Positions 26,356-61,457 of a stretch of DNA of 64,000 nt are shown in pieces. Location: the sequence record NC_061441.1, one strand, 5' to 3'. Made by a program: the position numbers and the translations under genes. Each line of letters starts with the position of its first letter. Position 1 is the first letter of the stretch. Below the pieces are notes generated by a model that was not told the DNA's origin, did no database searches, and saw only the letters and a list, made by a program, of their open reading frames with translations.

Positions 26356-26616
26356 ATGTACCACTATACGCGTGAAGAACTGGAAGAAATGAACTGCATC
26401 GAACTGGACCAGCTTGCAAACGAGCGCGGTCTGCTGGAAGATAAAGACGATGACGACGATCTGGACAATGACCTGCTCATCGGCATGATTCTTGACGACC
26501 AGAACGAACAGCAACTGGCAGACGAAGAAGCCGAAGATAAGCAACGCGCCGAAGATGATCGCGACCCACGTATTAATCGCCGTGACGGCCAAGACGGTTC
26601 AGACGACTATTGCTGA
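26356..26616 (+). CDS. Small acidic protein with Rho_N/HeH-like module
   Basis: LEEMNCIELDQLANERGL...DLLIGMIL. Confidence 0.65.
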   Translation: MYHYTREELEEMNCIELDQLANERGLLEDKDDDDDLDNDLLIGMILDDQNEQQLADEEAEDKQRAEDDRDPRINRRDGQDGSDDYC

Positions 26617-26673
26617 TTAAGTAAACCAAGAGGCTGCCAGCGCTGGTGGCCTCACTCACAAGAAGGAGCAATA

Positions 26674-27021
26674 ATGAAGCGCAAAGTAATATTGATAGAC
26701 ACGGCAGAGTTTCACAACCAACCCATCTCGTTTCCATCGATCATTGATTTTGACGGCATAGACACGGTGGTGTTTGTTGTGAAGTCAAATGGTGAGCACG
26801 GAGGCATTGATTATCTTGGTGCGTACTGTGCAACACAAATGACAGTTGGCTATACGAAAGCGCCTATGGCGCAGACGTTGAACATCGACGAATATGGCGT
26901 TGTGCCTCTCGAAGATGATATGAAGGCCAAGCTACTCCACACCAACCAGTACGTTGACGAAGTGCCTGAGCAACATCAAAGCATCTACAGCACGAAGACT
27001 GAAATCCTCTTCGCTGAGTAA
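26674..27021 (+). CDS. Hypothetical protein
   Basis: AAGGAG RBS, 115 aa. Confidence 0.75.
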   Translation: MKRKVILIDTAEFHNQPISFPSIIDFDGIDTVVFVVKSNGEHGGIDYLGAYCATQMTVGYTKAPMAQTLNIDEYGVVPLEDDMKAKLLHTNQYVDEVPEQHQSIYSTKTEILFAE

Positions 27022-27025
27022 CCAC

Positions 27026-27054
27026 AAGGGCTGCCATTATTGGTGGCCCTTTTT
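27026..27054 (+). terminator. Intrinsic terminator; related hairpin at 26630-26653
   Basis: AAGGGCTGCCA-TTAT-TGGTGGCCCTT-TTT. Confidence 0.8.
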
Positions 27055-27056
27055 CA

Positions 27057-27068
27057 TTTCTGTAAATA
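27057..27068 (+). promoter_or_regulatory. Variant motif TTTCTGTAAATA upstream of 27099
   Basis: Core CTGTAAATA, intergenic. Confidence 0.5.
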
Positions 27069-27098
27069 CCTCGTACATTCACTGATGCGAGAAACACA

Positions 27099-27470
27099 AT
27101 GCGCCGCTTTCTGACAGTCTTCAATGTCACTCAACAGGAGTTTGACGAACTACGCTTCTACCGCCACAAGCTCAACATCGTAACCACTTTGCGCCGCACT
27201 CACGGCATACTGCTGGTGGTACGTGAGACAGGCCGTGTGTTCAATGCCTCAACCGCCCTGTATCAACAAGCCGAAGAATACGACTTGCGCCGCGTAGACT
27301 TCACTGGTCCTGTCGAAGTGACCAAAGAGTTAGGCGAACGCTTCTCTGAACTCAAGCAGGCAATCGCAAACAACCGGCAGGATAAAAGCATCAACTACTT
27401 TGGCCGCACTCTCTCGCTCGACGAAACTCAAGAGCGATTGTACGCCACTAAACTGGAGATACTCGTATGA
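27099..27470 (+). CDS. Hypothetical protein
   Basis: 123 aa ORF. Confidence 0.7.
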   Translation: MRRFLTVFNVTQQEFDELRFYRHKLNIVTTLRRTHGILLVVRETGRVFNASTALYQQAEEYDLRRVDFTGPVEVTKELGERFSELKQAIANNRQDKSINYFGRTLSLDETQERLYATKLEILV

Positions 27471-27709
27471 CAACAATCGGTGCCTCGCTTGGTGCTCGCT
27501 TCGCTGCCACATCTTCGGAGCGTTGTTCTTCCCGCAAGAAAGCCAAGCCGCGCAACAAGACGCTGACTGCCGCAACAACTGCCGACATTCATAGCGCTGT
27601 CGAACGCCTGGCAATCAAGCTGGACACAACACGCTCGAACGTAATCGAGATCGCACTCAAAGAACTGTGCGCGAAACATGGCATAGCGATAGGCGATACC
27701 GATGAGTAA
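27467..27709 (+). CDS. Ribbon-helix-helix (CopG/Arc-like) DNA-binding protein
   Basis: TLTAATTADIHSAVERLAIKLDTTRSNVIEIALKEL fits the strand-helix-helix pattern. Confidence 0.65.
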   Translation: MTTIGASLGARFAATSSERCSSRKKAKPRNKTLTAATTADIHSAVERLAIKLDTTRSNVIEIALKELCAKHGIAIGDTDE

Positions 27710-28049
27710 CTTTATCTACTGTAGGCTGTACGGCGTTCAACATCGCCTGAATGTAGAAGGCATCGACTTCTCACAACAGACCGTATCGTATATGGTATCT
27801 GCCTCTGATGTGCTGCGCATGATGCCGCGCATTCAGGTAGGTGCGGCCTATGACACGTACACGCCATACAATGTGCTTAAGGCAGGACGTGCTGACTTCA
27901 AGATCAAAAAGATTGAGAAGATAAGCGCCGACGAGTGGCGCTATTCGTTTGTTGATTATGCTGATAGACCGTTCAACACAATTCTTAAACGGAGGTCGTA
28001 TGTCGATAGGACTAGTGAAAGTCGTCGGCTTAAAAGACAAAGCGCCTAA
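27702..28049 (+). CDS. Hypothetical protein
   Basis: 115 aa, overlapping start. Confidence 0.65.
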   Translation: MSNFIYCRLYGVQHRLNVEGIDFSQQTVSYMVSASDVLRMMPRIQVGAAYDTYTPYNVLKAGRADFKIKKIEKISADEWRYSFVDYADRPFNTILKRRSYVDRTSESRRLKRQSA

Positions 28050-28632
28050 GGGATTTGATTTAGATATCTGCCCTGTGTCGCGTGATGACGATTGGTGGTC
28101 ATTGAGTCCATTCTACCTAGGGCCTTGTCGTACACCGAGCGGCATTATGTTCCACAACATGGAGAACATGTGGCAGTATAGCAAGGTGTACGAAGAACAC
28201 CTAGTCAACTCGAATGATTTGTTTCATGGTGAAGTATCTGCCGAGTGGTGGGAATGGCATTTGAAAGGCAGTACAACCGAACAGGCGCATCGCTATCCAG
28301 CGGGGAAGGGTCGAAAGGCCCTGTTCTCGAAATGGGGCGACTTGCGCCTTTCGTACATTCCCGCACGAAAACAAATCTACGTGCCCGAATATGCGAAGCT
28401 GGTAATCCACAAGCCGAAGTTTAAACGCCTGCTTAAGGATTATAAGAAAGGTGCCAAGATAGTCCTCAGAGATTATGACACCTACGATATTCAAAAGGCC
28501 TATCCAGATTCTCGTAGTCCGTGGCTGTCGGCCATTCAAAACGAGAACGCAAAATTCGGCCATGCGTTTGTCATTGCATTGGCCTTGATGTTCCACGAAC
28601 GACCACTATGGTACAATCAATGGGTAATCTGA
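28000..28632 (+). CDS. NADAR-like (putative ADP-ribosyl hydrolase-related) protein
   Basis: LSPF...F.NMENMWQYSK resembles the NADAR LSNF...F...E...Q..K motif; GGAGG RBS before ATG 28000. Confidence 0.5.
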   Translation: MSIGLVKVVGLKDKAPKGFDLDICPVSRDDDWWSLSPFYLGPCRTPSGIMFHNMENMWQYSKVYEEHLVNSNDLFHGEVSAEWWEWHLKGSTTEQAHRYPAGKGRKALFSKWGDLRLSYIPARKQIYVPEYAKLVIHKPKFKRLLKDYKKGAKIVLRDYDTYDIQKAYPDSRSPWLSAIQNENAKFGHAFVIALALMFHERPLWYNQWVI

Positions 28633-28940
28633 CCAGATACGTAGCCTGCATTGAGTTGTCTACGCGCGAAGGAAATATGAATCTGCCGATTCTACCTCGC
28701 TGTGAACTACAAGCATTTGTTCTTGACGGACACACGCAAACTAAAGTGCCTATCAAACTTAATGTCACAAACGTCATCAATGTGATGGGCAAAACGTGTG
28801 GTAGTCTGCAATGGTTTGATTGTGTGAATCTGCTCATATGGTCATCGTTTGAGCCAGGCAGGTTCACGCTGTATATTGAACGTGCTTGCAAAACAGACGA
28901 GACTACAGACGACCAGCAATCTGCTGAACTCTGCAAATAA
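28620..28940 (+). CDS. Hypothetical protein
   Basis: Part of track ORF 28521..28940; ends ...AELCK within promoter cassette P3. Confidence 0.55.
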   Translation: MGNLTRYVACIELSTREGNMNLPILPRCELQAFVLDGHTQTKVPIKLNVTNVINVMGKTCGSLQWFDCVNLLIWSSFEPGRFTLYIERACKTDETTDDQQSAELCK

Positions 28941-28986
28941 TAGGCTGAAATAGCCATTCAGTCAGATACGCTTCCTATGCTATACT
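28927..28986 (+). promoter_or_regulatory. Early promoter cassette P3
   Basis: AACTCTGCAAATAATAGGCTGAAATAG; TG-C-TATACT at 38 nt; hairpin TGAGC-GCAGT-GCTCA. Confidence 0.8.
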
Positions 28987-29031
28987 ATACGTGAGCGCAG
29001 TGCTCATAAAACTAACGCTGAGGAGCGTATC

Positions 29032-29481
29032 ATGACTACTTTATCTATCGTTGATTTGAAGACCCCTGCGGAATTTACTACCCACCTGACTTTCGGTCAC
29101 ATGGAAGAACTGCGAGCCAGCCTTGAGCGCGCCTTGAATCGTTCTGATCTCGAGGTGTATGTTGAATGCGATTCGAACTACACACTCGAAGAAGCAAACA
29201 CCGACGGCCCTGACCAGCTGGTGGGCGATCATGAATGTATTAACGTTCACGTTCGTTATGCGGGAATGTCGTTCGATGAAGCGACGGCGAAAGGCGTGTG
29301 GGATATTTTACTGCAAACCCCGCACGAAGATAATAGCATGTCCGAGTGGTCTAACTCATACATCATGTATGTGGCCGATGAAAACCTCGACGCGCTGGAA
29401 GAAGTGACGATAGAAAACGGGAATCCTCGTATGATGGAAACTCTCGTTGATCGTATTAACTACTGGCTGCCAAAACTCTAA
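29032..29481 (+). CDS. Acidic hypothetical protein
   Basis: CTGAGGAG RBS, 149 aa. Confidence 0.8.
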   Translation: MTTLSIVDLKTPAEFTTHLTFGHMEELRASLERALNRSDLEVYVECDSNYTLEEANTDGPDQLVGDHECINVHVRYAGMSFDEATAKGVWDILLQTPHEDNSMSEWSNSYIMYVADENLDALEEVTIENGNPRMMETLVDRINYWLPKL

Positions 29482-29483
29482 GC

Positions 29484-29522
29484 GATTTGTGAAGGGCATT
29501 TGCGAGTGCCCTTTGAAAATCA
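29484..29522 (+). repeat. Intergenic interrupted hairpin, copy 1
   Basis: GATTT-GTG-AAGGGCATT-TGCG-AGTGCCCTT-TGA-AAATC; copy 2 at 29866-29906. Confidence 0.85.
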
Positions 29523-29547
29523 AACACCATAAGCTGAGGAGCTTAAC

Positions 29548-29865
29548 ATGTCATCTTCTACTACTCTGACTTTCATCTTCCCAGAAATGACCACTCTGGA
29601 AGTATCTATCGGTAATGGCATTGTGCCTGCGTATCTGGGTCTCGCAGAAAATAGAGACATAACATTCAGCGACGTTAAGGCGCTGCGTCTGATGGGTGAC
29701 TCAAACATCGTGGGTGCCATGTCACGCTTCGACCAGTCGATGTTGAATCTGCTGATCGACCGTCACATGTCACATGAGAATGTTCGCTGCCGTGACGCCA
29801 TCGACGCGGGCACCGAGCACTTCCCGTCTACTTGTCTTTATCTGAAAGTAGCGCACCACCGCTAA
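29548..29865 (+). CDS. Hypothetical protein
   Basis: CTGAGGAG RBS. Confidence 0.75.
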   Translation: MSSSTTLTFIFPEMTTLEVSIGNGIVPAYLGLAENRDITFSDVKALRLMGDSNIVGAMSRFDQSMLNLLIDRHMSHENVRCRDAIDAGTEHFPSTCLYLKVAHHR

Positions 29866-29906
29866 GATTTGTGAAGGGCATTCCAACGAGTGCCCTTTGA
29901 AAATCA
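29866..29906 (+). repeat. Intergenic interrupted hairpin, copy 2
   Basis: Same arms as copy 1, different loop (CCAACG). Confidence 0.85.
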
Positions 29907-29930
29907 CAACCTGTTCTGAGGAGAACAACA

Positions 29931-30284
29931 ATGCCAGCAACTGAACTGCCTATCGACGCTCGCGCTTTTGACGACCTGAGCAATAACAACTTCCTGCAAG
30001 TGTGCAACGCGATCTCTTTCTGCGTGTCTCGCGGTGACCTTGAGTTTCGTCATCATATCAAAGGTCGCCACATCGACGTTGCGTATCGCGCTGGTGGTAA
30101 CAACGTTTTTGGTATCAGCACCGTTCGCATCCTGATGCCGTCCGAAGTCCTGCGTGAAGATATCGTAGAAGACTTCGAGATCATTCACGGCGATGCAGTC
30201 ATTCAGATTGAACGCCAGAAAGATTCGTTCTCGACGTTGCAACGTATCGCAGGTGCAGTCGAAGCGTGTATGCCTAAACGGTGA
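29931..30284 (+). CDS. Hypothetical protein
   Basis: CTGAGGAG RBS. Confidence 0.75.
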   Translation: MPATELPIDARAFDDLSNNNFLQVCNAISFCVSRGDLEFRHHIKGRHIDVAYRAGGNNVFGISTVRILMPSEVLREDIVEDFEIIHGDAVIQIERQKDSFSTLQRIAGAVEACMPKR

Positions 30285-30349
30285 TTGTTGCTCGCAGGTT
30301 CTTACGAGAGCCTGCTGTCAACATAACCCCATAAGCTGAGGAGCTTAAC

Positions 30350-30757
30350 ATGAAACAATATCCACAACGCGGCCGTGTGTACACGCTGAAAGAAATCGAA
30401 AACGAACTGGAACTGCGTGACAGTCCGTTTCTGCGTTTCTGCCCGCAGAAAGTTCGTCTGCTGGGCGAGAAAGAAGCAGGCATTCAGGTAATCCAGCAAT
30501 CGCATATCGCCAACCTGTCTGACGTTGAAGGTTGGGCAGACACCGAGTGGTCATATGTGCGCGAGACCGAAGAGTGGATTCCGCTTTTCCGTGCAGTTGA
30601 CGACGCTGAGATTGAGGCGCTCTGCGTTATCGAGCCTGACACGTCTGAGTTTCGTTCATGTGATGGTATGTTCATCTACCCGAAAGGCGCGGTGTGCAAG
30701 CAGTACACGCCTTATGACAAAAAGATTCACGGCGAACTGCTGGTGGCAGTAGAATAA
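30350..30757 (+). CDS. Hypothetical protein
   Basis: Leader CCATAAGCTGAGGAGCTTAACATG identical to that of 29548. Confidence 0.8.
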   Translation: MKQYPQRGRVYTLKEIENELELRDSPFLRFCPQKVRLLGEKEAGIQVIQQSHIANLSDVEGWADTEWSYVRETEEWIPLFRAVDDAEIEALCVIEPDTSEFRSCDGMFIYPKGAVCKQYTPYDKKIHGELLVAVE

Positions 30758-30816
30758 CAAAAACAGGGACGCTCACGAAGGTGTGCGCGTCCCATTTCTC
30801 ATTTAAGGACAAATCT

Positions 30817-31326
30817 ATGATTCCCGAAATCACCCACATCTTCAACGTAATGATGACCAGCCTGAAAGACGTTCGCAGTGTTGAGCGTCTGCATCTCATT
30901 AACAAGAGTGCCGTGCGCTTTCATCTCAAAGGCAAACATTTCGACGTGCGTGGTCAGTACCCGCTGTTCTCTGTCCACGAAATCGAAGGCTCCACTATGG
31001 CTTACTCACGGGCAGCCAAAGAGATTGAATCCCAACTCAATGGTGAACCTATCGAAGAAGTCGAAGATAACACGCATGACGCAGCACTGGACGATGTGCT
31101 GATCGCTCATGTTGACAACATGGCCGAAGATCGTGTTCGCGCATACAACGAAGAATGCGGCGGCCCTGACTTAGACCCAATCAATATGCAGCGCACTTGG
31201 CTAAAGACCCACTTCCTGCATATAGGCCACAACACGCCTGACCTGTTAGAGACTGTGCTCTACATGGAAGGGAAAGAACGGAGAGAAGAACTGGCGAAAG
31301 CCATTAAGGGGGTATTATGTTTTTAG
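30817..31326 (+). CDS. Hypothetical protein
   Basis: AAGGA RBS before ATG 30817. Confidence 0.75.
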   Translation: MIPEITHIFNVMMTSLKDVRSVERLHLINKSAVRFHLKGKHFDVRGQYPLFSVHEIEGSTMAYSRAAKEIESQLNGEPIEEVEDNTHDAALDDVLIAHVDNMAEDRVRAYNEECGGPDLDPINMQRTWLKTHFLHIGHNTPDLLETVLYMEGKERREELAKAIKGVLCF

Positions 31327-31598
31327 CGTGGTTTAAATATCGGCGCGCCAAGAAACGTAACGAGTTCATGGCAGAAGTCGTATCTGCAATAGCAAAACTG
31401 AATCAGCGTGATCGCGACCTGTTGTGTCGTGCAATCAGTTTGCCTGCAACTGCTGACGGTCTGTTTGCGTTAACTAACATGCCGCGTAAAGAGCTGGCTG
31501 CACAATGCAATCAGTATTACGCCCATGTGTCGGGCAATAAATGGAACGTGTACGATGCGTTCTGCAAAGTCATTCATACCGCAAGAAAAGGAAAGTAA
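31317..31598 (+). CDS. Hypothetical protein
   Basis: 93 aa, overlapping start. Confidence 0.7.
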   Translation: MFLAWFKYRRAKKRNEFMAEVVSAIAKLNQRDRDLLCRAISLPATADGLFALTNMPRKELAAQCNQYYAHVSGNKWNVYDAFCKVIHTARKGK

Positions 31599-31600
31599 CC

Positions 31601-32041
31601 ATGAACGAAATAGATATTCTGATCCGTGAGTTCTCTCGGGCGTATCTGAAAGCAGAAGCATCACCTTTCGGTAACGTCGCATATCACGTACAAGACCAAA
31701 CAGACGGCCTGAAAAACATTGCACTCTATCTGCGTTTTCGTTCTGGTCCGCAAGCTCTTTGGCAGCGACCGTGTTTGGTGCTCGCCACAATTGATGTTCG
31801 TGACTCGGGTAAAGGTACATTCAGTGAGTTGCTTCGTCGCACAAAAGACCTGTGCCGCGAACGTGACTGGATTCTTCAAATTGAAAACGTCCTGACACCG
31901 CAGTTCAGGAAGTTCTTGCAGCGTGGTGGCTTCAAGCCGTTCGGTGTAGACAAAGACGTACCGTTCGGCAGTCTCTATTGGTTCTACGACGAGACAATCC
32001 CTCAGCAATGTGCGATGTACCCAGAGAGGGCACACCCATGA
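31601..32041 (+). CDS. GNAT-like acetyltransferase
   Basis: LATIDVRDSGKGTFSELL (motif A-like), LQIENV..PQF..FLQRGGF (motif B-like). Confidence 0.6.
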   Translation: MNEIDILIREFSRAYLKAEASPFGNVAYHVQDQTDGLKNIALYLRFRSGPQALWQRPCLVLATIDVRDSGKGTFSELLRRTKDLCRERDWILQIENVLTPQFRKFLQRGGFKPFGVDKDVPFGSLYWFYDETIPQQCAMYPERAHP

Positions 32042-32478
32042 TTAACTGGCCTGTAGTTCTCTGTGGATTCTTTCCACTGATCGCTTGCTATATAACAATT
32101 CCGTGGTTCCGTGCTGCTGTTAACCGTAGACTGACGTTCAAGCCGTTCGACTATGATGCGCTTGACGAGATACTGACTGACGGCATGCCTGAGAAGTTGA
32201 CGATCTCCTGTCTACAGGCTACGTACCGCGTCAACTCACCTGCGCATTCGCATATTGATATTTACGCACACAAGGACAATGTTGCTGTTGTTCGAATGTT
32301 GGTGGACCCTAACTTCCCGATAGCACGTTGTTTCCATGACGTGTTGAACGCGAACATAAACGCATTCGCTGTGAAGTCACATAGACCACCGACACTCATA
32401 ATCAATCAGTGTCTCTATCCTGTTGTTGAGTATGAGTACGACGATACGTACCTGTTGATTTACCTTAAACATAAGTAA
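32038..32478 (+). CDS. Membrane-anchored hypothetical protein
   Basis: N-terminal hydrophobic stretch. Confidence 0.65.
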   Translation: MINWPVVLCGFFPLIACYITIPWFRAAVNRRLTFKPFDYDALDEILTDGMPEKLTISCLQATYRVNSPAHSHIDIYAHKDNVAVVRMLVDPNFPIARCFHDVLNANINAFAVKSHRPPTLIINQCLYPVVEYEYDDTYLLIYLKHK

Positions 32479-32487
32479 GGGACTATC

Positions 32488-32787
32488 ATGGTCACCCAAC
32501 AACAACTATCAGAGTTTGCGCGACTGCCTACACTGCACCGTAAAGTGATACTTCGCAGTATGCAGGTTGAGATGTTGGGTGCCTTGCCTGAGCTTACTGA
32601 CATTGTGCGTGAAATGCTTTATCGTGCAATTGTCGTGGATGTGGCTCAAGCAGAAATGGCACTCCTTGCTGCCCGTCAAATGTGTGACAACAAAGACGTC
32701 CGTAGAAGTATTGACGATCTGCTGCAATTCGTTGCTCGTCTTCATGACGTTGCAACTGATAACTTTCTTTCTGGAGATTTACTATGA
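32488..32787 (+). CDS. Hypothetical protein
   Basis: 99 aa, AAGGGA RBS. Confidence 0.7.
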   Translation: MVTQQQLSEFARLPTLHRKVILRSMQVEMLGALPELTDIVREMLYRAIVVDVAQAEMALLAARQMCDNKDVRRSIDDLLQFVARLHDVATDNFLSGDLL

Positions 32788-33848
32788 ATAAGACCGTTGG
32801 CCTGATGATTGATGAAGACGTAATGAACTGGCTGGACATGCTGCTTGCGGGCGAACTGAGCAACGTCTTAGGTGCGTTGAACAATATCGTGTATGCCCGC
32901 CGTCAGGAGCTGTCTGTTGAACGTCTGACCGAAGACGAAGACATTGGTGCGCTCTCTCATAAAGAGCTGGAGATCATTCTGCGCTACGCCGCTCCTAATC
33001 ATGAGTACGATACGACGGTGCTGTCGAACGAACAACTGCTTCGTCTGGCGATGGATGCACAAGGGATCATCTCGTACACACTGCCATGCCATTGCTCTCC
33101 TATCATGGTTAAACGTGCTTTCGCTAACGGCAACGTGTGCTCACTGCTTGGCAGTTTTTCGAATCGTGCTGATATCGTCATGGCTGTACATCACTGGGAA
33201 TGTGGTCTGTCCAACATCTCGCTCGACGGTGTGACTGGTAACGACGAACGCCCAGACGAACAAGGCATGTACCTGTGCTACGATGAGCACAAGCAAGTTC
33301 GTTATGGCCGACTGTTCAAGAACGCCAACGACGGCTGGACATTCAGCGAGTATTATTCTGCTGGTGGATCTACTACGTGGCTTGAAGCGAGTCCAAACAA
33401 TGCGCTTGATGGTGACGACCTGCCGATCAGCCTGCTGACTAACTGGGTATTCGTTGTTCCAGATCGTTCGCCGTCTATTCTCAAACCTGCTGAGGGATTC
33501 AAGCGTCTGTCCGACACACAACGCATCTTCCTGTATCTGCGTAGCCTGAGTCCTCACGTTAAAGCTGAGATCGTCGCACACTTCGACGGCGTTCTGGACA
33601 ATCGATCATTCACCTCTGTCGATCAGATTGGTCGCCTGACTGAAAAAGACTGGCGCGATGCTGCGATTGCTATCGGTGAAGAAGAAAGTGGCCAAGAAGG
33701 TCCTCACTACTGGGATGATCGTAGTGCGTGGGCTTGCTTCGTCGCTGTGCTCAACTCTCTGTGCTTCGACATGGACACACGCGACTTCCAACCGCAGTAT
33801 GAGTACCAGGCCAACGACGACACTATGGAAGAAGACAACAATGGCTAA
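32784..33848 (+). CDS. Multi-domain hypothetical protein
   Basis: 354 aa; IGALSHKELEIIL...NEQLLRLAM is a possible HeH-like segment. Confidence 0.75.
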   Translation: MNKTVGLMIDEDVMNWLDMLLAGELSNVLGALNNIVYARRQELSVERLTEDEDIGALSHKELEIILRYAAPNHEYDTTVLSNEQLLRLAMDAQGIISYTLPCHCSPIMVKRAFANGNVCSLLGSFSNRADIVMAVHHWECGLSNISLDGVTGNDERPDEQGMYLCYDEHKQVRYGRLFKNANDGWTFSEYYSAGGSTTWLEASPNNALDGDDLPISLLTNWVFVVPDRSPSILKPAEGFKRLSDTQRIFLYLRSLSPHVKAEIVAHFDGVLDNRSFTSVDQIGRLTEKDWRDAAIAIGEEESGQEGPHYWDDRSAWACFVAVLNSLCFDMDTRDFQPQYEYQANDDTMEEDNNG

Positions 33849-34374
33849 ATCACTCGGCGTATACATGACTTACATTCTGCGTCACAAGCCGCAGGATATC
33901 GGAATCGCAATGGACACCCAGGGTTGGGTGTCTGTTCTGGACTTCTTGCAGAAAGCAAAGTATGTCAAACAGGTCACTCTCGAAATGCTGATTGCAGAAG
34001 TTGAGGCGGACGAGAAAGGCCGTTTCGAGTTCAACTCTAACCGCTCCAAGATTCGTTGTGTGCAAGGCCATTCGGTTGAGAACGTTATTCTGCATCTTGA
34101 ACCGTTCACTGACCTTGCGCCTTTGTATCACGGTACGGCAGATAAGAACGTGGCATCAATCATGCACGAAGGTATCACGAAGCGGAAACGCAAACACGTC
34201 CACATCAGCCGTGAAATAGAAACAGCCGAGAACGTTGGTCGTCGTCACGGTGCACCTGTTGTGTTTCAGATTGATACACAGGCAATGATCACTCACGGCT
34301 ATAAGTTCTACCGAGCCGAGAATGGAGTCATCCTGACCGATCACGTACCGTCCAGATATATCAAGTTGGTGTGA
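33841..34374 (+). CDS. kptA: RNA 2'-phosphotransferase (Tpt1/KptA)
   Basis: ILRH, GRF, IRCVQGHS (Arg-His-Arg-Arg tetrad), LYHGT, HVHIS, GRRHG. Confidence 0.92.
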   Translation: MAKSLGVYMTYILRHKPQDIGIAMDTQGWVSVLDFLQKAKYVKQVTLEMLIAEVEADEKGRFEFNSNRSKIRCVQGHSVENVILHLEPFTDLAPLYHGTADKNVASIMHEGITKRKRKHVHISREIETAENVGRRHGAPVVFQIDTQAMITHGYKFYRAENGVILTDHVPSRYIKLV

Positions 34375-34375
34375 T

Positions 34376-34777: not shown

Positions 34778-34795
34778 GCTCGTTTGTGATATAAT
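34748..34795 (+). promoter_or_regulatory. Early promoter cassette P4
   Basis: ATTCTGGATGAAATAG; TG-A-TATAAT 37 nt after the GG. Confidence 0.7.
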
Positions 34796-53708: not shown

Positions 53709-53744
53709 CCTGAGCGCTTACGGGCGCTCTACTGGAGAAACATT

Positions 53745-55181
53745 ATGTCATTCGATCTTCGTCAAAACTTACTGCTTGTTCGTGACGCTGCCTTGACAGG
53801 TAAGCCGCTGTTTTATTTCTACAACGCCATGGGGCGTGAGATGGTTCTCACTGGCGATGTGCTGCGTGAAATCATTGATCGTCAGAAAGAAGGTACGCTC
53901 TGCACTAACACTTACTGGGGTTTCGCTTCTGACCCTACGCTGGAAGTTTGGTCGTTCGATGATAACAATGACCTAATGCTTCACCATCACGTAGGCAAGT
54001 CCTGCAAAACGTTCCTGCCTTATGAGATGATTGAGAGTGCGCATGAAGGCTTCAAGCCGATCAATGGTCTGTTCATTGAAGACAGTCTGCGCCGTATCAT
54101 CCGTATTCATCTCAAGGCAACGTGCCGTGAAGAACAAAAGATCACTTGGTTCGCCGATCTGCCTGAGCCTGAAATGCGTAGTATGTTGCTATCTCTCGGT
54201 GTTGGTCCTATGCGTGTATCGCGTGAAGACAAAGAAGGTCTGATCAAACTTCATGACCGCTGGCTCGAAGACTTCGACGACAAATACAAGTACACGCACA
54301 ACGCAATCGGCTTGGACGACAACGAAAAAATTCCTGCTGACTATCGCCCTGAACGCATTCGTGATCTTACGAAGCGTATGATGGCTAACGGTAAGACTCA
54401 GGAAATGATGGACCAAACTCTGAATGACCTGCTGCGTCAGTGTCGTATCAGAGGCGATATCCCACATCCTGGTCGTAACTTCAATCGCTACCAGTTGACA
54501 TGCTATTACGCAACGCATTTGATCTTTGCGCAAGATGCGAAAGAGAAAATGGTTGAACTGATTGATACTCCGCAATTCGTGGTCAACTTTATTTATGGTT
54601 GGTACCCGGACTACACATGGATTATGATCAACGAAGAAACGTTCGAGTACCAGCGGTCTCTGGTACGTGCCGCGCTGATCAGTTTGCAGAGTCATGTGCA
54701 AAATGAAGTTGGCGTATACAAGATCGATCATGGTATGGTTACGTTCGCAGATAACTTTGACCCACACGCAGACGAAGAACCAGAAGATGACGGTCGGGTG
54801 GATGACGAAGAAGACGAGATTGAAAATGAACCTGAGCAGGAACGTGTGCCGCGGCCACGTAAATTCCCGGTGATGTTGCATCATAACCGCATCGACCACG
54901 ATGTTATTCGTCGCTCTTTGGTTCAGATGAAGATCATTGCGAGCCAGAGCGCTCTCAATAAACTGTTTAAGAAAGACGGTTTGACCGTTGCCCAGCAACA
55001 CGCAGCATATCGTACAATGCTGAAAAATGTTGTTCTGGACCCAGCACGGGACGTACTGAGCAAGCTGTCTGATTCGTCTTTATGTGCGCTAGCCATGAGC
55101 CTGACTAAGCTGAAAGACGGTGATGGCTATCCTCGTGACAATGCGTACCTGAAAGAACTAATTAAACACGCGGTCAAGTGA
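53745..55181 (+). CDS. Large hypothetical protein with acidic linker
   Basis: 478 aa, GGAG RBS; VIRRSLVQMKII..SALNKL segment. Confidence 0.8.
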   Translation: MSFDLRQNLLLVRDAALTGKPLFYFYNAMGREMVLTGDVLREIIDRQKEGTLCTNTYWGFASDPTLEVWSFDDNNDLMLHHHVGKSCKTFLPYEMIESAHEGFKPINGLFIEDSLRRIIRIHLKATCREEQKITWFADLPEPEMRSMLLSLGVGPMRVSREDKEGLIKLHDRWLEDFDDKYKYTHNAIGLDDNEKIPADYRPERIRDLTKRMMANGKTQEMMDQTLNDLLRQCRIRGDIPHPGRNFNRYQLTCYYATHLIFAQDAKEKMVELIDTPQFVVNFIYGWYPDYTWIMINEETFEYQRSLVRAALISLQSHVQNEVGVYKIDHGMVTFADNFDPHADEEPEDDGRVDDEEDEIENEPEQERVPRPRKFPVMLHHNRIDHDVIRRSLVQMKIIASQSALNKLFKKDGLTVAQQHAAYRTMLKNVVLDPARDVLSKLSDSSLCALAMSLTKLKDGDGYPRDNAYLKELIKHAVK

Positions 55182-55215
55182 ATCGTAAACATACCTATCA
55201 TTGAAGGGAAACAAA

Positions 55216-55638
55216 ATGCAATTCGAACAAAACATTCTGGTAGTTAATCGTGTGGCTCTTATCATGGGCGATGACCTCGTAGCTAAATGGGGTGAGGCTG
55301 CAAACGCCAATCGTGATCAAGCTGCGTATGCGACCATCGTTATTCTGTCTCGTCTTCAACAAAAGGTTATTGCTGCCCTTGCTGCGGAAAACCCAGAAGC
55401 CTGTTGCCGTCCTGATTTGCTTTGGACCGACTACGGTTCAATCTCAACCTCAGGCCTGTTTGTCATTGCTTCCTCTGCGGACCGTGAAGTGTTGAATCAC
55501 TTCGAAGACCATGACTACCTGAATCATCTGCACACAATCAAACGTGTTGCTGAGGAGAATGGATTCACGTTAACCGTTACGCCAGTGAAGCACTTATTCC
55601 CATTCGCTAACACTGAAATTCCAGCTAACATGAAATGA
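55216..55638 (+). CDS. Hypothetical protein
   Basis: Track ORF 55201..55638; MQFEQ start after AAGGGA. Confidence 0.7.
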   Translation: MQFEQNILVVNRVALIMGDDLVAKWGEAANANRDQAAYATIVILSRLQQKVIAALAAENPEACCRPDLLWTDYGSISTSGLFVIASSADREVLNHFEDHDYLNHLHTIKRVAEENGFTLTVTPVKHLFPFANTEIPANMK

Positions 55639-55646
55639 GGTGACCT

Positions 55647-55946
55647 ATGCCACGCGAACAAATTCTGATGAATGACGTTGCTATCGTCCTGACCATGAGC
55701 GAACGTCGTGCGTTCTTGGGACCTAAAGCTGATGGCTTCGTGTACCTGCCGTCGAAAGAAGCTCTCACGAAGTTTGAGGCTCATATCAAACGTTATGGTA
55801 GTCGTGATGAGTATGCGTTCATTGAACACCGCGAACTGCACTCTTTGAACTCTGCTGGGATTGTGGCTATCGCTCACGCTGTCGAATCTGACTCCGAGCG
55901 CCCGTGGCTGTGGACGAAAGAAGACTTCCGCGTTAAGCTCTGGTAA
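55647..55946 (+). CDS. Hypothetical protein
   Basis: GAGGTG RBS. Confidence 0.75.
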   Translation: MPREQILMNDVAIVLTMSERRAFLGPKADGFVYLPSKEALTKFEAHIKRYGSRDEYAFIEHRELHSLNSAGIVAIAHAVESDSERPWLWTKEDFRVKLW

Positions 55947-55950
55947 GCAT

Positions 55951-55999
55951 AAAACTGGCTAAAATCGTGGTATCAATTTAAGCCCGACTGTGATATACT
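55951..55999 (+). promoter_or_regulatory. Early promoter cassette P8
   Basis: AAAACTGGCTAAAATCGTGG; TG-A-TATACT at 37 nt; hairpin 56001-56023. Confidence 0.8.
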
Positions 56000-56049
56000 A
56001 AAAGCGTAGCGATGCTGCGCTTTTTCACTTATGTCTGAGGAGACAACAA

Positions 56050-56514
56050 ATGATTGAAGAAATCAAACCCACCATGTCGGATATTGAATTGCAGGACCAG
56101 ATGATCGATGCGGCTGCCCAGAAGCTGATTGAACTGAAACCTGAATGGGTGGACGTTTGTGCGGCTGCACTTCGTTTATATCTGACCGTGTGTGAAGAAA
56201 TTGGCGGTCCTATTCCAGAACTGCGGTTCGTCCACAACTCCAAGCCATGCCGCCTTCAATTCAATTTGAAAGAGTCGGTGGAAGGTGCCGAGTTCGTGGC
56301 GAACGAAATCGACAAAGACAAGCAGATGGCTATTGTCGATGAGATGTTGAAAACTGCCGAAGCGTGTCCGAACGGCCACTCGATGTTGGACTTCGCTATT
56401 TGCTCTGGACGCCTGTTCATGATTGGTTATGATGGCCTTGCTGGTACGCTCGATAAGATTTGCTTCTGTGCCAACAAGAAAAACTATTCCATGACTCTGG
56501 TTAAAGGTGAATAA
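56050..56514 (+). CDS. Hypothetical protein
   Basis: CTGAGGAG RBS. Confidence 0.8.
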   Translation: MIEEIKPTMSDIELQDQMIDAAAQKLIELKPEWVDVCAAALRLYLTVCEEIGGPIPELRFVHNSKPCRLQFNLKESVEGAEFVANEIDKDKQMAIVDEMLKTAEACPNGHSMLDFAICSGRLFMIGYDGLAGTLDKICFCANKKNYSMTLVKGE

Positions 56515-57199
56515 CATGAAACCTGACTACACTCTGCTGAAACGTAGTAAGACGCACGAAGATGTTTTCGCTTTCGTGTTTGATGGCGAGTTGCTTGTTC
56601 AATTCAAAGCTGTCCAGTTGCATAAAGCTCTGACCGAAACGCTCAAAGCAAACTGCATCAATGAAGTCGATATCCTGTGGCGCGACGGTACGCGTACGGT
56701 CCAACAACTGGTTGTGCATCATACGCGTGAGTTCGTACAGTTCGACACTATCGTCCACAACTACAGCGTGTGCCTGATGCTTCGCGCACAAGGCGTTGGT
56801 CATTCGCTCGCTGTGCCTGTCGATGTTCGTTCTATGTATGATGCCGACGGCCCGATGATCAGTGAGATTCGCATTGATAGTGAAACAGTCGCTGATCTAA
56901 TGCGTCACATTAAAACCACGCCATACATTGATCCAGAAGAAGATGACGATGTTGGCGATATGGACGAAGATGATGATTGGGATGACGATGATCTCGATCC
57001 GACCGAGTTCCACGATATCGAAACAGAATCTATTGCCGATAACAAATTGCAGATTGGCGACTGGGGATATCGCGCCCACGACTGGGCGATCACTCTGACC
57101 GACGAACAGGTAGACCGCATTCACTTCCTCGAAGTCGGCATTGACCCTGACATTGAACTGCCTATTGCCGATGATGCTAAGAAGGACGCATTCTTCTAA
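56507..57199 (+). CDS. Hypothetical protein with acidic C-terminal half
   Basis: 230 aa. Confidence 0.75.
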   Translation: MNNMKPDYTLLKRSKTHEDVFAFVFDGELLVQFKAVQLHKALTETLKANCINEVDILWRDGTRTVQQLVVHHTREFVQFDTIVHNYSVCLMLRAQGVGHSLAVPVDVRSMYDADGPMISEIRIDSETVADLMRHIKTTPYIDPEEDDDVGDMDEDDDWDDDDLDPTEFHDIETESIADNKLQIGDWGYRAHDWAITLTDEQVDRIHFLEVGIDPDIELPIADDAKKDAFF

Positions 57200-57390
57200 T
57201 GAAAACGATCAACGAACAAGTCAACGAATTGAAACAGCGCGGCGTGCTTATCATCGAAGAACACCAGAAGCATACGCTGCCAGATTTGACCTTCACGCTT
57301 GACTGCATGTGTCTGCCTCATACGAAGCGTGAAGTAGAGACAACCACGCGCGGCCGCGTTGTTAAGATTCGCCTGACAAACATTCACTAA
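57199..57390 (+). CDS. Hypothetical protein
   Basis: TAATG overlap, 63 aa. Confidence 0.7.
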   Translation: MKTINEQVNELKQRGVLIIEEHQKHTLPDLTFTLDCMCLPHTKREVETTTRGRVVKIRLTNIH

Positions 57391-57534
57391 CTTTTGTGGT
57401 CTTGGCCCGCCCGTCCAGAAATGCTCACCCCCAATGAGGTGTCTCGCGCATAGGCATGACGGTCACCGGGTCCTTTTTAGAGCGCACTACAGAGTACGCT
57501 GTACAAAGTAAACAACAAAACAGGAGGCTGTTAT

Positions 57535-57879
57535 ATGCGTTTCACCGAAGTATCAAAAGACGCACAGGTTGCGTTAATGTCTAGCGCACTTGCGGGAGTA
57601 ATTGAGGCATTCACCCGCGAAGAAGATGATGAAGGCCGCAAGATTCTAGTTCTGGCCCTCAAGCAAGTCGGTCTGACGGTAGATGAGTTCAGCGCACTTA
57701 TCTCTGACTTGTCGCCAGAAGTTGAGCTTGAGATCGTTCGCGTTATGGAAGCTGCTGATGCCGAAGCGGATGAAGAAGACGCAGACAGCGAACTCGACAC
57801 GATGGAAGAGCGCCCAGGCAACCTGAACGATGCGCCGAACATTAATGCAGACGGCTGGGAGAATCTCAAAGATGAGTAG
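57535..57879 (+). CDS. Acidic hypothetical protein
   Basis: AGGAGG RBS. Confidence 0.8.
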   Translation: MRFTEVSKDAQVALMSSALAGVIEAFTREEDDEGRKILVLALKQVGLTVDEFSALISDLSPEVELEIVRVMEAADAEADEEDADSELDTMEERPGNLNDAPNINADGWENLKDE

Positions 57880-58075
57880 TCAAGATGATGTGAATGGTAG
57901 AATTGCTGCGGCCGACGAGCAACGTCAGAAAGAGCGTGAATCACGCTATGATGATTGGTCGATTGACGACCTGCGTGATGCTCTGCTTGAGAATGGTCTT
58001 GTATTTGACGGTGAAGACGTAGACGACTACAGCCGCGCAGACTGTATCAGACTGCTACTGGCTGATGGCTTCTAA
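57872..58075 (+). CDS. Small acidic protein with Rho_N/HeH-like module
   Basis: YDDWSIDDLRDALLENGL...SRADCIRLLL. Confidence 0.7.
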   Translation: MSSQDDVNGRIAAADEQRQKERESRYDDWSIDDLRDALLENGLVFDGEDVDDYSRADCIRLLLADGF

Positions 58076-58080
58076 GCACA

Positions 58081-58128
58081 AAACTGGACAAAATCGTGGT
58101 TGTCTCAAATAGCTGCCTGAACTATACT
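58081..58128 (+). promoter_or_regulatory. Early promoter cassette P9
   Basis: AAACTGGACAAAATCGTGG; TTGTCT-17-TATACT; 37 nt from the GG. Confidence 0.8.
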
Positions 58129-58176
58129 ATATAGACAGCGAGACAACTATCTCTCTGTATGCCTTTGTTATTGCTT

Positions 58177-58325
58177 GACCGTGCGTTTTTCGATTTTCCC
58201 GGACGCACGGTCCTTTTTAAAGTGGACTTCGCTGAGGTTCCTTTAAAAAGGGTTCGATACCCTTTGAGCGCGTCGGGCTTTACGCGGTTTCCGCCTTACG
58301 TGCTCTCATGCTAAACCGCAAAGGA
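58177..58325 (+). ncRNA. Candidate structured 5' leader/ncRNA (four hairpins plus alternative pairing)
   Basis: Stems 58177-58212, 58214-58249, 58247-58265 (TTCGATA loop), 58266-58305; GCGGTTT/AAACCGC next to the RBS. Confidence 0.5.
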
Positions 58326-58332
58326 AATTGAA

Positions 58333-59091
58333 ATGCCTACTACTTCACGTCCTAAGACAGAAGACAAGTTTTCCCGTGCTCGCGCCGCCAAAAACTCACC
58401 TGAGCGTCAGGCCGCGGCCACCAAGAAAACGCCACGAGGTCCTTCCTCGGTTCGTCCTAAATCAACGGCAGATCGTGAGCCTAAGATTCGTGACGAGGAG
58501 CGTGTGTACAATCTCGTACATGCAATTCTGAGCGCGTGGAAAGCTGATGTGGGACATGCCGAAAACACGGCAGCCTCTGCTGGTATCATCAAAGTGTCTC
58601 GCCGTAAAATTGAAGGCTCCTTGCGTGACCTCAAGAATACGCGCTTCACTAAAATCCCGACGCTCATTAATGACGTCCTCGTGTATAACGAAGTCTGCAA
58701 TGAGTTCGGGCAGTGGGTGTACGTTGAGCATGACAGTCCTGATTGGATTTTCGTGCGACTGCCGGATAACAGCACACCTGTGATTCGTGCTGATATCAGC
58801 TACGACAAGACAGGCAAAACTGCCGCATCTGTTTCAACTTCAAGCGAAGTTTTGCTGGAAGACTTGGACGAAGAAGAGGAAGATGAAATCCCTGAGAACG
58901 TCGAATATGACGACGAGGACGATTCTGATGTGAATGAAGAAGAGGACGACGAGGAGGAGTACCAGTCCTGGTCCCTCAGCCAACTTCAAAACTTTGCTAA
59001 GGCCGAAGGTTACATCGGCATCAAAGATGAAGGTTGGAACGACCGCCAGACGCTTCTTGCTCGCATCCTGAATAAGGGAGCAATCAAATGA
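58333..59091 (+). CDS. Hypothetical protein: basic N-terminus, acidic linker, C-terminal Rho_N/HeH-like module
   Basis: YQSWSLSQLQNFAKAEGY...RQTLLARIL; AAGGA RBS. Confidence 0.8.
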   Translation: MPTTSRPKTEDKFSRARAAKNSPERQAAATKKTPRGPSSVRPKSTADREPKIRDEERVYNLVHAILSAWKADVGHAENTAASAGIIKVSRRKIEGSLRDLKNTRFTKIPTLINDVLVYNEVCNEFGQWVYVEHDSPDWIFVRLPDNSTPVIRADISYDKTGKTAASVSTSSEVLLEDLDEEEEDEIPENVEYDDEDDSDVNEEEDDEEEYQSWSLSQLQNFAKAEGYIGIKDEGWNDRQTLLARILNKGAIK

Positions 59092-59537
59092 GTCTGACTA
59101 TTCGCTCTGCTGCCGAAACTGCTGCAATGATCATTGAAAACGTCACTCTCTACTCTCAAGAGAAGGGGCACGAATATCCGCTGCCGCGCTTTAAGATGCC
59201 CGACAATGCGATACGTCGAATCTCTGGTCATGCTCGCGTTCTGCCTGAAAGCTATATTGAGCAACTGTCTATCGAGCTGCAACAAATCGACTGGATGATG
59301 CTGCGGTATAACGCCGGCGAGTTCTTGTTCATGCACTACGATATCCCAAAGAACTGGACGCGACTGAGTGCGAAGCGTGTGGTCCCTAATGACGACCCTG
59401 CCGCTGAGTACGATACGTGGACGCTTCCTGAACTTCAGGGATTCGCTCAACGTAACGACTTTTTGCAGCCTGACGAAGAGGGCTTCAACGATAGAGCGTC
59501 ACTGATTCGCGCTATCATGCTAGGCGAGACCCATTGA
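59088..59537 (+). CDS. Hypothetical protein with C-terminal Rho_N/HeH-like module
   Basis: YDTWTLPELQGFAQRNDF...RASLIRAIM. Confidence 0.8.
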   Translation: MSLTIRSAAETAAMIIENVTLYSQEKGHEYPLPRFKMPDNAIRRISGHARVLPESYIEQLSIELQQIDWMMLRYNAGEFLFMHYDIPKNWTRLSAKRVVPNDDPAAEYDTWTLPELQGFAQRNDFLQPDEEGFNDRASLIRAIMLGETH

Positions 59538-59555
59538 GTAGGGGAAGATAATCGA

Positions 59556-59702
59556 ATGAACAAATCTAAGCGGGACGCAGAAGACCCCGACATTGCTAAA
59601 ATGCGCAAGCGTCTGGTAGATGCGAAAATCATCAAGCCAGAAGCTGCTGTGAAGCTGTCAAGCAATGACATTGTGAAGCTGTACACTTACTACAGCGTAT
59701 AA
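59556..59702 (+). CDS. 48-aa protein (MNKSKRDAED...YYSV), absent from the ORF track
   Basis: GGGGA RBS; KMRKRLVDAKII..EAAVKLSSNDIVKLY resembles the C-terminus of 59868..61457. Confidence 0.7.
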   Translation: MNKSKRDAEDPDIAKMRKRLVDAKIIKPEAAVKLSSNDIVKLYTYYSV

Positions 59703-59755
59703 GCAATAATGAGCAGGCAGTGAACGTGCTGCCTGCTATCTGCGAAGTATGCAGA

Positions 59756-59804
59756 AAACTGGACAAAATCGTGGTTGTTATCTGAAAGCAACCTATGCTA
59801 TACT
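59756..59804 (+). promoter_or_regulatory. Early promoter cassette P10
   Basis: AAAACTGGACAAAATCGTGG; TTGTTA-18-TATACT; hairpin GACGC-AATATC-GCGTC. Confidence 0.8.
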
Positions 59805-59867
59805 TAATGCAGACGCAATATCGCGTCGGCAAGCAAATCAAACAACAAATACTGAGGAGTATTAATC

Positions 59868-61457
59868 ATGGCACGTCTGGAAACTAACACTAACCTGGTT
59901 GGCAAAACTATCATCCTGCTGAACGGCACCAAATCTAAAATCGAAGATGCAATCGCGTCTGGCTATAAAGTGAAGGGCCAGTCAAAACGTATCGCCACCC
60001 GCTGCGTCATCAAAGAAGGTTCTCACTTCCGCGAAATTGAGCGCATGAACATGAGCCAGCTGGAAGATACTGGTGAAGGTTACGTTAAACTGAAAGATGC
60101 GAAAGCGTCTGGTAAGAAAGCTGGCGCGAAAGAGAAAGAGCCGAAAGCGTCTGGCAAGAAGACTGGCGGCAAAGCTACGGCCAAAGAGAAAGAGCCGAAA
60201 GTTCGCCGTAAGTCTTCTAAAGAGCAAGGCGATGAGTATCAGGCTCTGGCGAAAGAAATCATCAAAGGCGGCAAACGTGCTGCGCCAGTTGAAATCGACG
60301 AGATCGATGGCGACCTGACTGATACCGTTGCTCAACGTCTGGTAGACGTACTGAACAATACCGAAATCGCCAAGCTGTGCGCTGACAACAAAACGCCGAT
60401 CGCTAACGCCATCGAAGTTGCTTACGGCGCTGAGTTCGCACCTGAAACAAACGTCATGCAGATCACGCTGAGCCTGCAATACGCGAAGCCTGTTAAAACG
60501 CAGTCATCTTCTACGCTGGAAAACGCCGATGCAATCGCGGCCCGTGCTAAGAAAATGATCGCGCCGAAGCTGTCTAAGAAACTCGCTAAGGCGATTCGTG
60601 AAGCGTTCGGCCTGGAAGACGCCGCCGAGCTTGAAGCTGGTACCGTGTTGTTGTCTGACGGCGCTGAGTTCGTCTTCTGCGGCGAGAGCGCGAAGCACCT
60701 CGGCAAAGCGCTGCTGTATGTTGTAGAGACCGACAAGTTCAAATCTGTTGTAGGCTCTGCGCTGGCTGATTACGAAATTGGTCAGGAAGAAGAAGAGGAA
60801 GAAGAGGAAGACCTCGAGGAAGAGGAGTCTGAGGAAGAAGAAGAAGAGGAGGAGGAGGAGGAAGAAGAAGACGGCGAAGAAGACGACGGTGAGTCTGACG
60901 ATACTGAATACCAGTATGTGGCCGTGACCAAAGATCATACCAACATGATCAACAAGAAAGTCACCGCTAAGTATCACGCCGCGCTGGCTGAGCGCTTCAA
61001 CACAACCGAAGAAGCTCTGGTACCTGGCCTCGTGTTGACTGACGGCGAAACAACGTTCGCTTACCTGGGCTGTGATAGCAAAGGTGGTCTGCTGGTCATC
61101 GACGTTGAAGCTGAGGAGAACGAAGAAGACGTTCTGCTGTATAGCAAAGCCGATATCAAAGAACTGACCGACTTCAATCCTGTGCTGGATGACGTAGAAG
61201 GCGCTGCCGATGATGAAGGCGAAGAAGAAGACGGTGAAGAAGACGGTGAAGAAGAAGACGGTGAAGAAGATCTGGACGAAGAAGACGGCGAAGAGGAAGA
61301 AGACGACGAAGACTTCGACTTCGATGATGTTCCTGCCGTTGACCTGAAAGATCTGTCCGAAGACGAACTGCGTGACCGTGTCGTTGAAGCCGGCCTGACC
61401 ACCGTGCGTAAAGCTGACAAAATGAACGCGGCTCAACTGCGCAAGCTCCTGAAATAA
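59868..61457 (+). CDS. Large multi-domain protein with Lys-rich and Glu/Asp-rich IDRs
   Basis: 529 aa; KASGKK/KEKEPK repeats, poly-E tracts, terminal helix-pair module. Confidence 0.85.
   Translation: MARLETNTNLVGKTIILLNGTKSKIEDAIASGYKVKGQSKRIATRCVIKEGSHFREIERMNMSQLEDTGEGYVKLKDAKASGKKAGAKEKEPKASGKKTGGKATAKEKEPKVRRKSSKEQGDEYQALAKEIIKGGKRAAPVEIDEIDGDLTDTVAQRLVDVLNNTEIAKLCADNKTPIANAIEVAYGAEFAPETNVMQITLSLQYAKPVKTQSSSTLENADAIAARAKKMIAPKLSKKLAKAIREAFGLEDAAELEAGTVLLSDGAEFVFCGESAKHLGKALLYVVETDKFKSVVGSALADYEIGQEEEEEEEEDLEEEESEEEEEEEEEEEEEDGEEDDGESDDTEYQYVAVTKDHTNMINKKVTAKYHAALAERFNTTEEALVPGLVLTDGETTFAYLGCDSKGGLLVIDVEAEENEEDVLLYSKADIKELTDFNPVLDDVEGAADDEGEEEDGEEDGEEEDGEEDLDEEDGEEEEDDEDFDFDDVPAVDLKDLSEDELRDRVVEAGLTTVRKADKMNAAQLRKLLK

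Follow-up and report, generated by a model that had tools for sequence, protein, structure and literature searches.

The gp321-gp325 locus

We analysed a stretch of 64,000 nucleotides (nt) from record NC_061441.1, referred to below as the window. Its sequence is that of Erwinia phage pEa_SNUABM_16 (100% identity; MZ443782.1, Alexandravirus, 266,838 bp), a jumbo myovirus of the Lu11/PaBG 'Lupandier' group (PMC7412058), and window coordinates equal those of MZ443782.1 minus 186000. All 105 complete coding sequences of the window are annotated as 'hypothetical protein'. Our subject is a small module of 38-45 amino acids (aa), predicted to adopt a helix-extension-helix (HeH) arrangement, which recurs on five consecutive genes, gp321 to gp325. 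An initial annotation, made from the letters of the DNA, had drawn attention to peptides of this kind, and these are indeed present in the genes where it placed them. The locus is a variable one, with window positions 57500-61500 covered to at least 80% in only 6 of 45 related records. Below, window-wide counts of modules refer to the 105 window proteins, whilst comparisons of the locus refer to 13 related phages, in which the homologous region was scanned with a combined hidden Markov model (HMM). We distinguish three sequence types, W (gp321, gp322 and gp323), M (gp324) and S (the C-terminus of gp325).

All five genes and their modules lie on the plus strand. The first, gp321 (67 aa, 57872-58075), consists of an N-terminal helix followed by a W-type module (residues 26-67, 57947-58072), and is a minimal stand-alone HeH protein. 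In gp322 (252 aa, 58333-59091) a basic N-terminus and a conserved alpha/beta body (residues 54-173) are followed by an acidic linker that is predicted to be disordered (residues ~174-209, 58852-58959) and then by the W-type module (residues 210-252, 58960-59088). The third gene, gp323 (149 aa, 59088-59537), couples an N-domain belonging to phrog_26231 (residues 1-102) to a W-type module at residues 108-149 (59409-59534); the PHROG match is restricted to the N-domain, and the family profile has 106 positions. A stand-alone M-type module occupies residues ~10-46 of the 48-aa gp324 (59556-59702). Finally, gp325 (529 aa, 59868-61457) begins with an N-domain and ends in an S-type module that resembles SAP and LEM domains (residues 492-529, 61341-61454), and it also contains K-rich repeats and two long acidic tracts. 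It had been proposed that the module usually follows an acidic linker, which holds for gp322 and gp325; gp323 has only a short acidic stretch at this position, and the description does not fit gp321, gp324 or the more distant gp257, where the module is N-terminal.

Two further features of gp325 may be recorded here. It carries two K-rich repeats of the form KASGKK...KEKEP, and its poly-E tracts reach 18 D/E per 20 residues. It also has an N-terminal domain of ~55 aa in common with the neighbouring gp326 (window 59868-62791 for the pair; hhalign Prob 50, P 1.6e-4), and a C-terminal domain may be common to the two as well (Prob 5).

The W-type modules and their kinship with Ish1

Similarity amongst the three W-type modules is readily detected. 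BLASTP aligns gp322 with gp323 at 1e-6, and an HMM built from the three sequences recovers gp323 at E 1e-27 and orthologous modules at E 1e-9 to 1e-27 in Yoloswag, SNUABM_25, SNUABM_32, SNUABM_1, SNUABM_17, AD1 and an IMG/VR contig. Searches by tblastn with the modules gave matches confined to the same phage clade. When the W profile was instead run against 1.84 billion representative proteins, eight matches were obtained at E <= 1e-3, of which four were phage clusters, three (E 2e-7 to 2e-6) were fungal proteins composed of Ish1 repeats and one was a repeat artefact; no bacterial protein matched at this threshold.

The kinship with the fungal Ish1 motif (PF10281; Ish1, Les1 and Msc1) is borne out by direct comparison of profiles. 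When 18 fungal Ish1 repeats were made into a profile, hhalign aligned it with the W profile at Prob 97.6 and E 4e-12, both helices being included, and an enlarged W set gave Prob 97.1; across both W sets P ranged from 6e-11 to 4e-12 over 34-38 columns, and none of 200 shuffles reached the observed score. The Pfam Ish1 model itself responds more faintly, matching gp321 at E 0.0019 (18.9 bits) and the excised gp322 module at E 0.0012 (19.6 bits), both below the gathering score of 26.6 bits, and giving no match to the gp323 module. Taken more widely, it matches five of nine W modules (best E 1.7e-5, all sub-threshold) and four of 57 full-length gp322 homologues. The W-type modules and Ish1 have the same length and the same predicted HeH shape, together with a pattern of aromatic-x-x-W-S/T-x-x-x-L, a glycine and a hydrophobic residue, an extended stretch, and R-x-x-L-hydrophobic. 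At the profile level, then, the W-type is an Ish1-type HeH.

AlphaFold2 (AF2) models, which cover gp321 and gp322 and hence the W-type, are consistent with this assignment. In gp321 (predicted local distance difference test score, pLDDT, 79) helices at residues 31-40 and 55-65 flank an extended stretch, and in the gp322 module helices at 215-225 and 238-246 (pLDDT 82-86) do the same. Both modules are thus predicted as a helix, ~14 extended residues and a second helix at pLDDT 80-89, in agreement with the two helices and extended segment of ~10 residues by which HeH, LEM and SAP domains are recognised. The gp322 body is modelled confidently (pLDDT 85-94) and the linker is not (pLDDT <50). Foldseek found no significant neighbour of this body in the PDB, and its BFVD matches are limited to proteins from the same group of phages, none of them characterised; a sequence search of the PDB with the W and gp325 C-terminal profiles returned nothing meaningful.

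There are clear differences of setting between the phage and fungal copies. Fungal proteins carry four to seven tandem repeats with a basic extension on a membrane-anchored protein of the nuclear envelope, whereas the phage modules occur singly, at a terminus and with an acidic extension, on cytoplasmic proteins without a transmembrane segment. Each of these window proteins bears one module and no repeat array, a difference from Ish1 that is one of context and not of fold. Ish1 motifs are themselves similar to the HeH/LEM and SAP domains that bind DNA and anchor chromatin, and have no molecular function known for them (PMC12222759).

The M and S types and the five-gene superfamily

Placing gp324 and gp325 alongside the W-type required more distant comparisons. 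A W-only HMM scored both below 5 bits, and with W HMMs of three and then nine sequences, as well as with W-only hhalign, gp324, gp325 and gp257 could not be told from reversed-sequence noise, which indicates that the five segments do not form one close family. The broader conclusion that they are not one family at all was considered from these searches and abandoned, being overturned by profiles that were independent of the W set. When a profile built from fungal Ish1 alone, with no phage sequence, was run over the window, its top five proteins out of 105 were gp321, gp322, gp323, gp324 and gp325, with scores in that order of 36.0, 30.6, 27.4, 19.0 and 17.2 (gp321 at Prob 94.8). The reversed-sequence maximum was 17.0 and the sixth real protein scored 16.3. 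If the three W genes are taken as true, the chance that ranks four and five would fall on exactly the two adjacent genes is ~1 in 5151. The claim of one family on five consecutive genes thus stands for a superfamily, and fails if one close family is meant.

Profiles built from orthologues tie the types together. By hhalign the M profile aligned with the gp325 C-terminus over 38 gapless columns (Prob 92.7, P 4e-7) and with fungal Ish1 at Prob 95.3, and the gp325 C-terminus aligned with Ish1 at Prob 79.9 and with W at Prob 57.5. All observed profile scores lay between 22.6 and 47.9, compared with maxima of 14-16 in 200 column shuffles and in reversed alignments, and one cluster of gp322 homologues, P0040, is an intermediate linking the M and S types.

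The S-type leans towards other members of the superfamily. It is conserved at the gp325 C-terminus across 50 phage records, and amongst eight orthologues Pfam SAP matches seven (best E 8.9e-4) and Pfam LEM five (best E 5.1e-3), all sub-threshold; the window gp325 itself reaches 13.7-13.9 bits with SAP, whose gathering score is 23.9 bits. Like SAP (PF02037), LEM (PF03020) and HeH (PF12949) domains, the gp325 C-terminus shows L-x-x-x-E-L-R...G-L...K...L-x-x-L-L with a basic loop, and as in many SAP proteins the module is terminal and lies behind a flexible linker. It differs from them not only in that the matches are sub-threshold but also in following a very long poly-acidic tract. To our knowledge BAF is absent from bacteria, so that the BAF-binding function of LEM would not apply.

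The modules had been described initially as Rho_N-like, a label that we would now replace. Rho_N (PF07498) gave no match in any Pfam scan at E <= 1-10, and the sub-threshold Ish1 (W-type) and SAP/LEM (gp325) matches fit better. There is some precedent in phages nonetheless, since proteins annotated as 'Rho termination factor N-terminal domain-containing' in Gordonia phage GMA6 and Escherichia phage Mansfield likewise combine a small HeH-type module with an uncharacterised protein; their structural similarity to the gp322 model is weak (E 0.2-1.1, not significant), and the window modules differ from them in lacking any Pfam Rho_N match. NCBIfam and Pfam gave no match on M-type proteins or gp333, and PHROGs returned families without known function along with one spurious endonuclease VII match on an acidic tract. 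HeH-type modules annotated on phage proteins elsewhere are therefore already known; what is new is that phages have Ish1-like and M-type subfamilies, that these are concentrated in one locus and that their swapping is documented. Taken together, these profile comparisons indicate that gp321 to gp325 each bear one predicted HeH module of the LEM/SAP/Ish1 superfamily, diverged into three types.

Module exchange and the origin of gp324

The number of modules at this locus ranges from one to five per genome amongst the related phages, with pEa_SNUABM_16 having the most. The gp325 module is kept in every related genome sampled, and gp321-gp323 carry one or more W or M modules in all of them except Y3, which retains only the gp325 module.

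Exchange is most apparent at the end of gp322. Of 58 clusters of gp322 homologues, 11 end in a W-type module and 22 in an M-like one (13 gp324-like, eight divergent and one intermediate), whilst 24 have no module after the body and acidic linker and one is truncated. Where gp322 lacks a module, the adjoining gp323 bears a W module (five of five loci examined), and the gp323 subtype of W module is also found directly on gp322 bodies (P0009 and P0033/SNUABM_25). The Yoloswag orthologue of gp323, by comparison, has the phrog_26231 N-domain without any module. One subtype is thus found on two unrelated bodies, and a single body has three alternative ends. These profile matches and exchanges show the HeH domain to be an autonomous, recombinationally mobile module, and the part of the initial annotation that saw helix-extension-helix modules of the LEM/SAP/HeH superfamily in these segments is well borne out.

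The same comparisons offer an origin for gp324. In Alexandra, SNUABM_2, SNUABM_22 and SNUABM_40, and in 13 metagenomic clusters, its peptide forms the C-terminal end of gp322 orthologues. A 730-bp cassette (58850-59579, plus strand), which runs from the end of the gp322 linker through the gp322 W module and gp323 to the first codons of gp324, is missing from the 95%-identical phage SNUABM_22; by blastn, window positions 57500-58849 and 59580-62000 are collinear with positions 1501-2849 and 2918-5359 of the comparison locus L014. Given these additional 730 bp, gp324 is, as far as sequence comparison can tell, the orphaned C-terminal M module of an ancestral gp322 that was cut off by insertion of the cassette. 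It had been suggested that stand-alone copies act as competitors, for which gp324 was the example, and the cassette gives the better explanation. There is nevertheless a separate open reading frame (ORF) for gp324 in Dickeya phage AD1, with synonymous differences at eight of 39 codons and conservative amino-acid changes at five of 39, and a Shine-Dalgarno-like GGGGAAG lies upstream of the gp324 ATG. Because it is conserved as a separate ORF in AD1, gp324 may serve some separate function. The stand-alone form is a rare one, confined to two clusters amongst 5.8 billion proteins.

We also observed that gp320 (57535-57879) is without the Cys-rich C-terminus (C-x-x-C ... C-x-C) that is present in the orthologues from AD1 and the IMG/VR contig (L009/L010). 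The gp320 C-terminus is another variable end at this locus.

Probable promoters and a possible leader RNA

A 20-mer, AAACTGGACAAAATCGTGGT, occurs three times on the plus strand of the window (55952-55971, 58081-58100 and 59756-59775), where chance would give 0.01 matches. Behind each copy lies a sigma70-like -35/-10 pair, its -10 hexamer being TATACT, and the three are upstream of gp317, gp322 and gp325 respectively. Before gp322 the complete element spans 58081-58128 and combines TTGTCT, a 17-nt spacer and TATACT; its sister copies begin at 55952 before gp317 and span 59756-59804 before gp325. The 20-mer is ~93-96% conserved in related phages, from which it is likely that, together with the hexamers, it marks a phage promoter class. 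The sigma70-like character of the hexamers suggests that the gp317, gp322 and gp325 units may be transcribed by the host RNA polymerase.

The gp322 promoter is followed by a leader of ~200 nt (58136-58332, plus strand) with a strong predicted fold (minimum free energy -72.7 kcal/mol, z -5.2, 0/200 shuffles). It is conserved in 11 phages, and of the 48 pairs predicted by RNAalifold, 14 show compensatory changes. The leader includes a hairpin with a U-run that resembles a terminator or attenuator, as well as a T-arm-like GGGUUCGAUACCC hairpin, and gave no match with Rfam or ARAGORN. It could function as a regulatory leader, or else as a small RNA. GC-rich hairpins are also present at 59712-59737, just past the gp324 stop, and at 55998-56022, just past the gp317 promoter, the second of which precedes a T-run; both may be terminators or attenuators that flank the transcription units.

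Module candidates elsewhere

The module had also been reported at four scattered genes, and here the outcome is mixed. The best supported is gp257 (86 aa, 26356-26616, plus strand), in which a W-like HeH at residues ~4-46 (26365-26493) precedes an acidic tail. Over 41 columns its orthologue profile can be aligned with that of the W-type (Prob 86.8, P 4e-6, shuffle null 0/200), and this alignment supports a predicted module there; the Ish1, M and S profiles did not detect gp257. The evidence is weak for an internal HeH-like segment in gp314 (gene at 53745), where four profiles converge on residues ~135-170 (54147-54254, plus strand) with scores of 18.5-24.8, at Prob 2-15% when the full-length alignment is used and 25-83% for the excised segment; the SNUABM_25 orthologue of gp314 is found with the combined HMM at E 4e-5. 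We rejected gp273 (32784) and gp299 (45397) as carriers, their orthologue profiles being negative in the same way as that of the control gp326 (best score amongst the three 20.6, Prob 5.5%). The combined HMM found no further protein in the window.

Outside the window, at 255597-256391 of MZ443782.1 (5597-6391 of locus L030), we noted a 264-aa protein with two tandem gp325-type (S) HeH modules (E 1.2e-6) separated by acidic stretches; its SNUABM_5 homologue (L016 4770-5537) has one HeH module. Two adjacent pairs of paralogues were also seen within the window, gp228 and gp229 (3273-5751; 39% identity over 72 aa, E 1e-10) and gp241 and gp242 (11392-13139; 31% identity over 143 aa, E 1e-11).

Discussion

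We consider that the HeH modules of this phage are mobile terminal adaptors on accessory genes of the early or middle period, a reading to which we would give a probability of roughly 0.55. Each module would act as a binding domain, spaced from a variable effector body by a disordered acidic linker, and gp321 to gp325 would probably be read by the host RNA polymerase from their sigma70-like promoters. The binding partner probably differs by type. Net module charge is -10 in gp321, +2 in gp322, -5 in gp323, +3 in gp324, +1 in gp325 and -13 in gp257, a spread that speaks against one partner common to all modules, and also against all of them binding nucleic acid. A basic, R/K-rich extended loop reminiscent of SAP is present in the S and M types, which may contact nucleic acid, whereas the W types, which apart from gp322 are strongly acidic (net -5 to -13), would more likely bind protein. 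The fast swapping, gain and loss of modules amongst phages of one host would suggest an accessory role in host interaction.

Several considerations weigh against this reading. No module attains the gathering score of any Pfam model in our scans. The direct comparison of M with W is weak (Prob 6), and the link between them requires transitivity through the Ish1 profile. Foldseek found no PDB match at E <= 0.001 for the gp321 or gp322 models, in which the domain is small and embedded in a larger model, so that the HeH fold is argued from sequence profiles and predicted secondary structure. The promoters are assigned by consensus matching and conservation, and the function of adaptor is carried over by analogy from what the superfamily does elsewhere.

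It is conceivable that all of the modules instead constitute a single docking tag that recruits diverse early proteins to one hub, for which RNA polymerase, Rho, the nucleoid and a phage scaffold have been put forward, with the stand-alone gp321 and gp324 as competitors or regulators. Put another way, W, M and S would be exchangeable address tags that deliver diverse early effector bodies to the host nucleoid, the transcription machinery or a phage-built structure, with free gp321 and gp324 tuning occupancy. The presence of W and M at the same position on orthologous gp322 bodies suggests functional equivalence and would favour this, as would the retention of the gp325 module in all sampled genomes, and of W or M on gp321-gp323 in all but Y3, together with the conservation of gp324 in AD1. 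The surfaces and net charges of the types are, however, strongly divergent (-13 to +3), and the residues conserved across types are those of the hydrophobic core and helix-capping positions, a pattern that does not favour one shared target. The cassette accounts for gp324 without a competitor role, the stand-alone form is rare, and no bacterial protein matched the W profile at E <= 1e-3. On balance the observations tilt away from one partner for all modules; we regard both the hub and its address-tag form as unlikely, and the docking tag with competitors as speculation.

A second possibility is that the modules bind one another, such that association between like or unlike HeH domains would bring the proteins of the gene block together in a single complex. 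Fungal Ish1 and Les1 assemble as homo- and heterodimers within the nuclear envelope's lumen, away from chromatin (PMC12222759), and this interaction provides a precedent, although it is not known to run through the Ish1 motif itself. The module-bearing genes adjoin and have common promoters, modules of acidic character (gp321, gp323) are present together with basic ones (gp324, gp322), and at the loci examined a gp322 without a module is always paired with a gp323 that bears one. Y3, by contrast, retains the gp325 module only. Mutual binding seems to us doubtful to much the same degree as the hub.

If all of the modules were nucleic-acid anchors of the SAP or Rho_N kind, they would hold their proteins on host or phage DNA or RNA, and gp325, with its K-rich repeats, acidic tracts and HeH, would be chromatin-like. 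A DNA-binding role is known in the superfamily (PMC12222759), and the sub-threshold SAP/LEM matches and K-rich repeats of gp325 are in line with it, as is the basic loop of the S and M types. Across the types the charge pattern is S +1, M +3 and W -10 to +2. The strongly acidic gp321, gp323 and gp257 (-10, -5 and -13) are ill-suited to direct contact with nucleic acid, and the lack of any Pfam Rho_N match also counts against anchoring; as an account of every module we hold it to be somewhat more improbable still. The idea that these are unrelated amphipathic helix pairs that resemble one another by chance, with a true family limited to gp321-gp323, could draw on the failure of the W-only searches, the sub-threshold Pfam matches and the empty Foldseek search, but is already disfavoured and in our judgement very improbable given that an independent fungal profile puts exactly five adjacent genes on top, that M and S align without gaps at P 4e-7, that the shuffle nulls stand at 0/200 and that W and M interchange at the same site of orthologues.

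Early genes without annotation number in the hundreds in jumbo phages, and a shared, swappable HeH module provides a first handle on one block of such hypothetical genes. It defines domain boundaries within them (body, disordered acidic linker and tag) and predicts which parts are interchangeable. The pattern of swapping, gain and loss amongst phages of one host is typical of host-interaction loci. Were the exchangeable address tags to prove correct, they would represent a modular logic of host takeover not yet described for phages. The finding itself is genuine, though modest, as an enlargement of a domain family already known; it takes the Ish1 motif into viruses of bacteria, where a small and tractable system might reveal what this motif binds.

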